A stretch of 64,000 nucleotides of DNA from the sequence record OR670491.1; one strand, 5' to 3'. The translations under genes were made by a program, and so were the position numbers. Positions 1,165 to 1,255 of this stretch are shown one piece after another. The first letter of the stretch is position 1; each line of letters starts with the position of its first letter. The notes beneath the pieces were generated by a model. The model did not search any database. It had not been told where the DNA came from and saw nothing but the letters and a program-made list of their open reading frames with translations.

Positions 1165-1255
1165 GGAAGGGTGGCAGAGCGGTTGATTGCACTCGCCTAC
1201 TAAGCGAGCAAGTGTTAGAAATAACGCTTCGTGGGTTCAAATCCCACCTCTTTCG
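1165..1255 (+). tRNA. tRNA-Ser (anticodon ACU), class II
   Basis: Acceptor GGAAGGG/CTCTTTC, anticodon arm CTCGC-CTACTAA-GCGAG, long variable arm, T arm GTGGG-TTCAAAT-CCCAC, discriminator G73; CCA not encoded. Confidence 0.85.

Follow-up and report, generated by a model that had tools for sequence, protein, structure and literature searches.

The window analysed here, a 64,000-nt stretch covering positions 248001-312000 of record OR670491.1, belongs to Escherichia phage vB_EcoM_JNE01 (JNE01), an Asteriusvirus and 121Q/PBECO4-like jumbo myovirus, and contains a genuine class II Ser-type tRNA gene with adenosine at the first position of the anticodon (A34). The gene, tRNA-Ser(ACU), is located at positions 1165..1255 on the plus strand, and its anticodon A34-C35-U36 at 1199..1201. 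We consider it probable that this tRNA is a functional decoder that keeps its A34 unmodified, is specific for AGU codons and supplements the host tRNA-Ser(GCU).

Results

A class II serine tRNA with an A34 anticodon

Of the five tRNA genes that ARAGORN detects in the window, the first is a tRNA-Ser with the anticodon act at 1165-1256 on the plus strand. The Rfam tRNA model (RF00005) matches 1165-1255 over the full length with 49.9 bits (gathering score 29, E 1.1e-07), and the gene has the cloverleaf, the 7-nt anticodon loop, U33, the conserved T- and D-loop bases and the long variable arm that are diagnostic of a class II Ser-type tRNA. The 7-bp acceptor stem (G1-C72, G2-U71, A3-U70, A4-U69, G5-C68, G6-U67 and G7-C66) includes two G-U pairs, and the D arm carries G18 and G19. 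The anticodon stem CUCGC/GCGAG encloses the loop C32-U33-A34-C35-U36-A37-A38, with A34 at window position 1199. The variable arm is 20 nt long and has a GAAA loop on what RNAfold predicts to be an 8-bp stem, the T arm reads GUGGG-UUCAAAU-CCCAC, and the discriminator base is G73. The RNAfold MFE structure contains the acceptor, anticodon, variable and T arms of a class II cloverleaf, with a non-canonical pairing of the D arm. Direct reading, ARAGORN and Rfam thus all agree with the original prediction, which had described a class II Ser body with a long variable arm, G73 and the loop CU-ACU-AA.

E. coli SerRS relies on G73, G2:C71 and C11:G24 as identity elements, and the Ser tRNAs of E. coli have G2-C71. 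The phage tRNA has G73 and C11:G24, but G2-U71 instead of G2:C71. CCA is not encoded by the JNE01 gene: G73 is followed by CAAAAAA, although the C at 1256 could serve as C74.

A34 is conserved in diverged phage alleles

Eighteen phage records, among them 121Q, slurp01, phAPEC6, G17, SP27, UB and Sharanji, contain the 92-nt gene with 100% identity. No variant at position 1199 appears in the contigs of three independent sequencing runs, although contigs drop rare variants and a minority base is possible. A sequencing error or a private mutation, against which the original prediction had suggested consulting reads and relatives, is ruled out by these two sets of data. The prediction had also reckoned with close relatives showing GCT; some relatives do hold Ser(GCU) at the same slot, but in another tRNA body and not as a G34 version of this gene. 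The homology block shared with 121Q (595-1259, 665 nt) contains 21 mismatches, all of them upstream of 1089; the 171 nt holding the promoter and tRNA-Ser(ACU) have 0 mismatches, and homology stops at the 3' end of the tRNA.

Three phage alleles of tRNA-Ser(ACU) exist, namely the JNE01 type, that of EJP2 and the Munch type, with a pairwise identity of only 70-75%. The EJP2 allele has the same D and anticodon arms as that of JNE01 but differs in the variable arm, the T stem and the acceptor stem, in which G2:C71 is present. The Munch-type allele was identified, with the anticodon confirmed, in Salmonella phage Munch, Erwinia phage Hallingskeid and Klebsiella phage fENko-Kae01, and by sequence match alone, the anticodon not being read, in 7t3, SE_PL and PHA46. 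Its anticodon stem ACGGU/ACCGU differs from the JNE01 stem CUCGC/GCGAG in 5 of 5 pairs. Unlike the JNE01 allele, both the EJP2 and the Munch-type alleles encode CCA, and their variable arms differ but also form stems. Across the alleles, RNAalifold recovers compensatory double changes at 19 of the 26 stem pairs, and all four main stems are covered. The loop CUACUAA is unchanged in all three phage alleles, as it is in two giant-virus tRNAs described below. Since this loop is kept in alleles that are only 70-75% identical and whose stems covary, we infer that the anticodon is under selection. The canonical GCU is one A-to-G transition away and was not seen in the 22 records in which the ACU anticodon was confirmed.

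The Munch-type allele (L141:150-240, L142:150-240 and L143:150-240) has A73 and not G73. Its anticodon stem is that of the Ser(UGA) tRNA of the same clade, and its variable and T arms are similar to those of Ser(GCU); from its sequence, this allele looks like a recombinant of Ser tRNA bodies.

Split-box A34 tRNAs are rare in cells and recur in viruses

In a survey of 4047 bacterial genomes, ANN tRNAs other than Arg were found to be rare, with those of split codon boxes occurring sporadically and never without a GNN isoacceptor; stringent filtering left 132 ANN genes, of which only 5 are in split boxes (preprint 10.64898/2026.05.15.725136). This is in good agreement with the original prediction that bacterial A34 is nearly restricted to tRNA-Arg. 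The exact A34 anticodon arm of the JNE01 gene had 0 matches in 185,579 bacterial and archaeal species genomes. When metagenomes were searched with any base allowed at position 34, there was no A34 among the first 120 matches listed; the scan gave 119 T34 Arg(UCU) genes and two G34 Ser(GCU) genes. A chimera with tRNA-Arg(UCU) was considered and rejected: the Arg(UCU) of the phage clade has a different arm, and the arm of tRNA-Ser(ACU), a generic NCU arm, is also present in genuine bacterial Ser(GCU) tRNAs.

A search of IMG/VR with the A34 arm returned 121Q and two giant-virus contigs, the fourth match not being a tRNA. Each of the two contigs, which are giant-virus MAG sequences with 34-36% GC, carries an 83-nt class II tRNA-Ser(ACT) with the same anticodon arm, G73 and no CCA (L138:8448-8530 and L139:3037-3119). 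Given these two AT-rich contigs, tRNA-Ser(ACU) recurs in unrelated AT-rich viruses. The genome papers of Sharanji, EJP2, JP4 and fENko-Kae01 give tRNAs by amino acid only and leave the anticodon unmentioned, and our literature search found no paper noting the ACU anticodon of these phages.

AGT is the preferred serine codon of JNE01

The whole JNE01 genome contains 8 tRNA genes – Leu(UAA), Gly(UCC), Ser(UGA), Ser(ACU), two CAU genes and two Thr(UGU) – and Ser(GCU) is absent from this set. In fENko-Kae01, the set consists of Ser(ACU), Ser(UGA), Thr(UGU), Met(CAU), Tyr(GUA), Pro(UGG), Lys(UUU) and Glu(UUC), again without GCU. Of the 93,737 codons in 378 long JNE01 ORFs, AGT accounts for 24.5 per 1000 and is the top Ser codon (33% of all Ser codons), with AGC at 5.4 per 1000 (507 codons). 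In the host, represented by a single 50-kb E. coli K-12 sample, the preference is reversed, with 8.5 AGT vs 18.1 AGC per 1000. The AGT:AGC ratio is thus 4.5 in JNE01, the highest of its NNY pairs, vs 0.47 in the 50-kb host sample, and AGT ranks 7th of 61 codons in excess demand over that sample. AGT reaches 31.1 per 1000 in the large structural genes of JNE01, and fENko-Kae01 has the same bias (19.2 AGT vs 5.6 AGC per 1000). The cognate codon of tRNA-Ser(ACU) is therefore over-represented in the phage relative to the host sample, as codon compensation calls for, and the AGT versus AGC comparison with the host that accompanied the original prediction comes out in favour of an AGU-tuned decoder.

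The same prediction had held that a bias towards AGTACT supplies the AGU codons. The excess itself is real: AGTACT occurs in 1000 copies in the 355.6-kb JNE01 genome, 8.4x the mononucleotide expectation, and no other palindromic hexamer comes close to it in enrichment. Yet only 347 of the 2295 AGT codons are in-frame AGT-ACT, which makes the hexamer a minor and not the main source of AGU demand. Thirty percent of the AGTACT copies fall in the 21% of the genome outside long ORFs, and some overlap promoter-like sites. Four other palindromes, CCCGGG, CCATGG, AGGCCT and AGCGCT, have 0 copies each in the JNE01 genome.

Serine tRNA genes as mosaic cassettes

At the slot that tRNA-Ser(ACU) occupies in JNE01, PBECO4, BF17, Turkey5 and SD-15 carry Ser(GCU) with a different body. 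The ACU gene is thus not a point mutant of Ser(GCU), and a simple G34A origin from the phage Ser(GCU) was rejected since the two tRNA bodies differ throughout. Among Asteriusvirus genomes, approximately 13 have ACU only, five have both genes (ph0011, JP4, Turkey3, WPEC3 and EJP2), and many have GCU only, including the close relatives PBECO4, BF17 and Turkey5.

In Turkey3 the gene order is CDS, Ser(GCU), HNH homing endonuclease, Ser(ACU), Met, Asn. Positions 1126-1259 of JNE01, comprising the promoter and the tRNA, are 100% identical to the ACU cassette of Turkey3 (L017:1762-1895), so that the promoter travels with the ACU gene, while JNE01 sequence upstream of 1126 matches the Turkey3 sequence preceding GCU. 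From this comparison, JNE01 looks like a Turkey3-like arrangement that has lost GCU and the HNH gene between two copies of a promoter repeat. A promoter block of approximately 29 nt (TTGACTAAATAGTTCAGTACTGATA...) stands in front of both Ser(GCU) and Ser(ACU) of Turkey3, as well as at JNE01 1126-1154; the -10 elements in Turkey3 are TAAAAT ahead of GCU and TATAAT ahead of ACU. This repeat may have been the substrate for loss of the GCU-HNH segment. Judged by such comparisons, the tRNA genes of these phages act as mosaic cassettes, and the tRNA cluster of JNE01 itself contains an HNH homing endonuclease gene (3560..4084, plus strand, GenBank annotation) as a context for cassette-like tRNA exchange.

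This mosaic structure brings up the possibility that the tRNA is functional but that ACU is near-neutral relative to GCU, i.e. that it is an alternative cassette gained and lost through homing-endonuclease or repeat-mediated recombination which decodes AGU adequately and brings no advantage. The patchy distribution among close relatives, the Turkey3 gene order, the apparent deletion in JNE01, the end of 121Q homology at the tRNA 3' end and the weak fitness effects of ANN tRNAs in E. coli are all compatible with it, and that close relatives thrive with Ser(GCU) only (PBECO4, BF17, Turkey5) is a counterpoint to any advantage of ACU. Nevertheless, although one A-to-G transition would restore GCU, A34 has been kept in three alleles that are 25-30% diverged, including at every anticodon-stem pair, and the Munch lineage has ACU without GCU across phages of three host genera. 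We therefore assign neutrality a low probability, well below that of a selected AGU decoder.

Neighbouring tRNA genes

Downstream of tRNA-Ser(ACU), on the same strand, lies a 90-nt tRNA-like gene with the anticodon CAT, a 17-nt variable region, A73 and an encoded CCA (1265..1354; ARAGORN; Rfam 50.4 bits), which is probably co-transcribed with it. This gene is common to G17, phAPEC6, Sharanji, ECO103 4-12-1 and EC22.5-2 at 97.5%, and is approximately 81-83% identical in Erwinia phage Kaldavass and Xanthomonas phage XbC2. Its T loop is UUAGAAU, with A where C56 is usual, and its D loop is without GG. A CAU anticodon on a long-arm tRNA is odd; Met, Ile2 after lysidine formation, or another identity are candidates.

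The third gene in the row, a 'tRNA-Met(CAT)' at 1360..1432 (plus strand), has an unpaired acceptor stem, matches the Rfam model only at model positions 8-63 and has a fold z-score of +0.40. JNE01 1346-1384, reaching approximately 25 nt into this gene, matches BF17 2351-2388, and the BF17 tRNA-Asn starts at 2364. By its sequence, the 1360-1432 element is probably a chimeric pseudo-tRNA at a mosaic or recombination junction. Finally, two tandem tRNA-Thr(UGU) genes lie at 5660..5813 (plus strand; ARAGORN; Rfam 66.1 and 67.1 bits). They are unlike in sequence and 7 nt apart, and relatives have one or two copies.

Signals for expression and maturation

A sigma-70-type sequence, TTGACT-17 nt-TATAAT with a TG extension, at 1126..1154 on the plus strand has 11 of 12 consensus matches, ends 10 nt before the tRNA and would act as the promoter of tRNA-Ser(ACU). 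JNE01 also encodes a CCA-adding enzyme (record positions 73803-74915; Pfam PolyA_pol head and RNA-binding domains), which would fit a tRNA gene with no encoded CCA; some T4 tRNA precursors likewise lack an encoded CCA and rely on its post-transcriptional addition. The one raw-read RNA run examined (X21, made from a sample that also yielded a sequence carrying the locus) had 0 reads on the locus and no phage reads at all, and a literature search for phAPEC6 transcriptome data found none.

With no encoded CCA, two G-U pairs in the acceptor stem and a neighbour at 1360-1432 that looks like a broken tRNA, the gene could be suspected of being a non-functional pseudogene or a tRNA-like element with a non-translational role. 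We regard this as highly improbable: compensatory changes are found in all four main stems across alleles, the gene is identical in 18 records while the adjoining sequence diverges, it has a dedicated consensus promoter, and the other alleles do encode CCA.

A34 is unlikely to be edited to inosine

If A34 were converted to inosine, either by host TadA or by a phage enzyme, a single tRNA would read AGU and AGC, perhaps also AGA, and the loss of GCU would be explained. What makes this worth considering is, first, that the arm CUCGC-CUACUAA-GCGAG is the same as that of the E. coli TadA substrate argV, CUCGG-CUACGAA-CCGAG, except for the 31:39 pair and position 36; second, that Phe-tRNA(AAA), a split-box tRNA in its native body, is suggested to be converted to inosine in E. 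coli (preprint 10.64898/2026.05.15.725136), so that the tRNA body may matter for A34 editing; and third, that relatives carry an annotated 'tRNA-specific adenosine deaminase'.

Each of these points has a counterweight. The phage arm is equally close to that of serV, CUCCC-CUGCUAA-GGGAG, and mimicry of the TadA substrate arm was accordingly given no weight. All known E. coli TadA editing takes place within the core UACG, and a Leu(AAG) tRNA was not edited by the enzyme in vitro (PMC11472039); the loop CUACUAA, having U36, does not contain the core U33-A34-C35-G36. An orthogonal tRNA with ACU in a CU-ANN-AA loop otherwise identical to that of tRNA-Arg2 had only A and no inosine at position 34 in E. 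coli (PMC11066159). Moreover, I34 would misread AGA (Arg) as Ser.

As for an enzyme of the phage itself, a 'tRNA-specific adenosine deaminase' is listed among the phage genes in the paper on Sharanji and in the slurp01 record. The orthologous ORF of JNE01 (record positions 31012-31488, L008), unannotated and 158 aa long, matches the T4 dCMP deaminase 1VQ2 at E 1.8e-34 but TadA structures at only ~1e-5, and tblastn with E. coli TadA on JNE01 found no further deaminase. The dCMP-deaminase gene is present in every member of the clade, including GCU-only phages, RaK2 and GAP32. A phage TadA was therefore rejected: the only CDA-fold gene is a T4-Cd-like dCMP deaminase, found clade-wide and independently of ACU or GCU. 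In slurp01, Sharanji and KP13-7, the orthologs carry the wrong label 'tadA / tRNA-specific adenosine deaminase'. Taken together, these observations leave inosine at position 34 a decidedly improbable state of this tRNA.

For an unmodified A34, published measurements give an expectation. In E. coli, the orthogonal ACU tRNA read AGU at 9.4% and AGG at 0.36%, whereas reading of AGC and AGA was too low to detect (PMC11066159). A Ser-tRNA(ACU) built on the serV backbone was tolerated, gave better growth in some media and carries a low predicted risk of mistranslation (preprint 10.64898/2026.05.15.725136), which fits the rarity of AGA and AGG in the E. coli host. By analogy with the nearly exclusive reading of AGU in the former experiments, and with AGT the top Ser codon of the phage, the AGU-tuned decoder of the original prediction is the reading that the data indirectly support.

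Escape from an anticodon nuclease is doubtful

The original prediction had offered a second possibility, an anticodon variant that escapes a host anticodon nuclease. Put more broadly, A34 would let the phage AGY tRNA evade such a nuclease or another tRNA-targeting defence directed against tRNA-Ser(GCU). T5 tRNAs acting against the PARIS and PtuAB systems are the precedent. In its strongest form the proposal would make the ACU/GCU polymorphism an arms-race locus, at which A34, unmodified or altered by an unknown activity, keeps up AGY decoding under an undescribed defence that attacks tRNA-Ser(GCU). The locus is indeed polymorphic and flanked by mobile endonucleases, as loci in arms races often are, and HEPN nucleases such as ApeA cut the anticodon loops of many tRNAs. 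Phage tRNAs with altered anticodon loops that evade tRNA-targeting defences have been described (PMC10264068).

The proposal nonetheless faces several difficulties. Literature searches for a nuclease directed against tRNA-Ser(GCU) found none, only HEPN examples of broad specificity; a preprint on ApeA was dropped as a lead since its tRNA was Ser(GGA), a different one. We know of no nuclease that singles out tRNA-Ser(GCU). Outside position 34, the loop (C32, U33, C35, U36, A37, A38) is the same as in serV. As an indirect argument, because ACU does not read AGC in the published experiments, which used other tRNA bodies in E. coli, ACU-only phages would still need the host tRNA-Ser(GCU): JNE01 has 507 AGC codons (5.4 per 1000) and no GCU tRNA, and its tRNA-Ser(ACU) would not take over the decoding of a destroyed host tRNA. 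This second possibility has thus fared poorly, and we consider it unlikely both that A34 serves escape and that the polymorphism reflects an arms race of this kind. If it did, tRNA-Ser(ACU) would be the first split-box A34 tRNA with a role in defence evasion.

Discussion

In the reading we prefer, tRNA-Ser(ACU) is an AGU-specific decoder with an unmodified A34. Host RNA polymerase would transcribe the gene from its own near-consensus sigma-70 promoter, the transcript would be trimmed, and CCA would be added by the host or by the phage-encoded CCA-adding enzyme. Host SerRS would then charge the tRNA via its long variable arm; Ser charging of the ACU alleles is assumed, with the caveat that JNE01 has G2-U71 and the Munch type A73. 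Going by published experiments on other tRNA bodies, the unmodified A34 would pair with U3 in Watson-Crick fashion, so that AGU and essentially nothing else is read. During infection the tRNA would add AGU capacity to that of the host tRNA-Ser(GCU), which reads AGU by G-U wobble only, with AGC being left to the host tRNA. A fitness benefit for the phage may follow from this.

tRNA-Ser(ACU) adds to the codon-compensating tRNAs of phages and is a natural instance of a type of anticodon avoided by cells. As in T4, T5 and the tRNA clusters of jumbo phages, it lies in a tRNA cluster that also contains homing endonucleases, its cognate codon is much commoner in the phage than in the host, and the rest of the JNE01 set is also aimed at A/U-ending codons; it differs in having A34 in a split box, whereas the other JNE01 tRNAs have U34 (C34 in the CAU genes). 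The E. coli tRNA-Ser(GCU) serV shares with it the class II structure, G73, the codon box and the loop except for position 34, and the two anticodon stems are one pair apart. However, the phage tRNA has A34 and not G34, with AGC reading lost according to published work on other bodies, has no encoded CCA, carries G2-U71 and has another variable arm. The natural substrate of TadA, E. coli tRNA-Arg(ACG), also has A34 and a very similar anticodon arm, but U36 in place of G36 breaks the UACG core, and amino-acid identity and tRNA class are different.

The closest cellular parallels are Thr(AGU) of Mycoplasma and Leu(AAG) of Lactobacillales, in which A34 likewise goes together with AT-rich genomes and a preference for U-ending codons, and ANN replaces GNN (preprint 10.64898/2026.05.15.725136). 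These tRNAs serve four-fold boxes, in which misreading does no harm, and in some species Leu(AAG) undergoes editing to inosine; the box of the phage tRNA, in contrast, is split between Ser and Arg. The engineered Ser-tRNA(ACU) and orthogonal tRNA(ACU) studied in E. coli (PMC11066159; preprint 10.64898/2026.05.15.725136) share the anticodon, the loop and the host species with the phage tRNA, but are laboratory constructs, while the phage gene is natural and kept by selection in a virus lineage.

The near-absence of unmodified ANN anticodons has been described as a paradox, since engineered ANN tRNAs work at little cost in E. coli (preprint 10.64898/2026.05.15.725136). Unmodified anticodons starting with A are nearly missing from cellular life, and those of split boxes are the rarest kind; here, jumbo phages infecting Escherichia, Salmonella, Klebsiella and Erwinia have kept one such tRNA by selection over 25-30% divergence. 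Many of their genomes have tRNA-Ser(ACU) in place of a GNN tRNA of their own, and it may be the GNN partner supplied by the host that lets a virus afford A34. Phages that carry the gene and can be cultured on E. coli K-12 (Sharanji, slurp01) provide a natural system for the gains and costs of A34 decoding. A small lesson for annotation is that the Ser(ACU) genes are recorded only as 'tRNA-Ser' in these genomes, in which a dCMP deaminase is mislabelled tadA.
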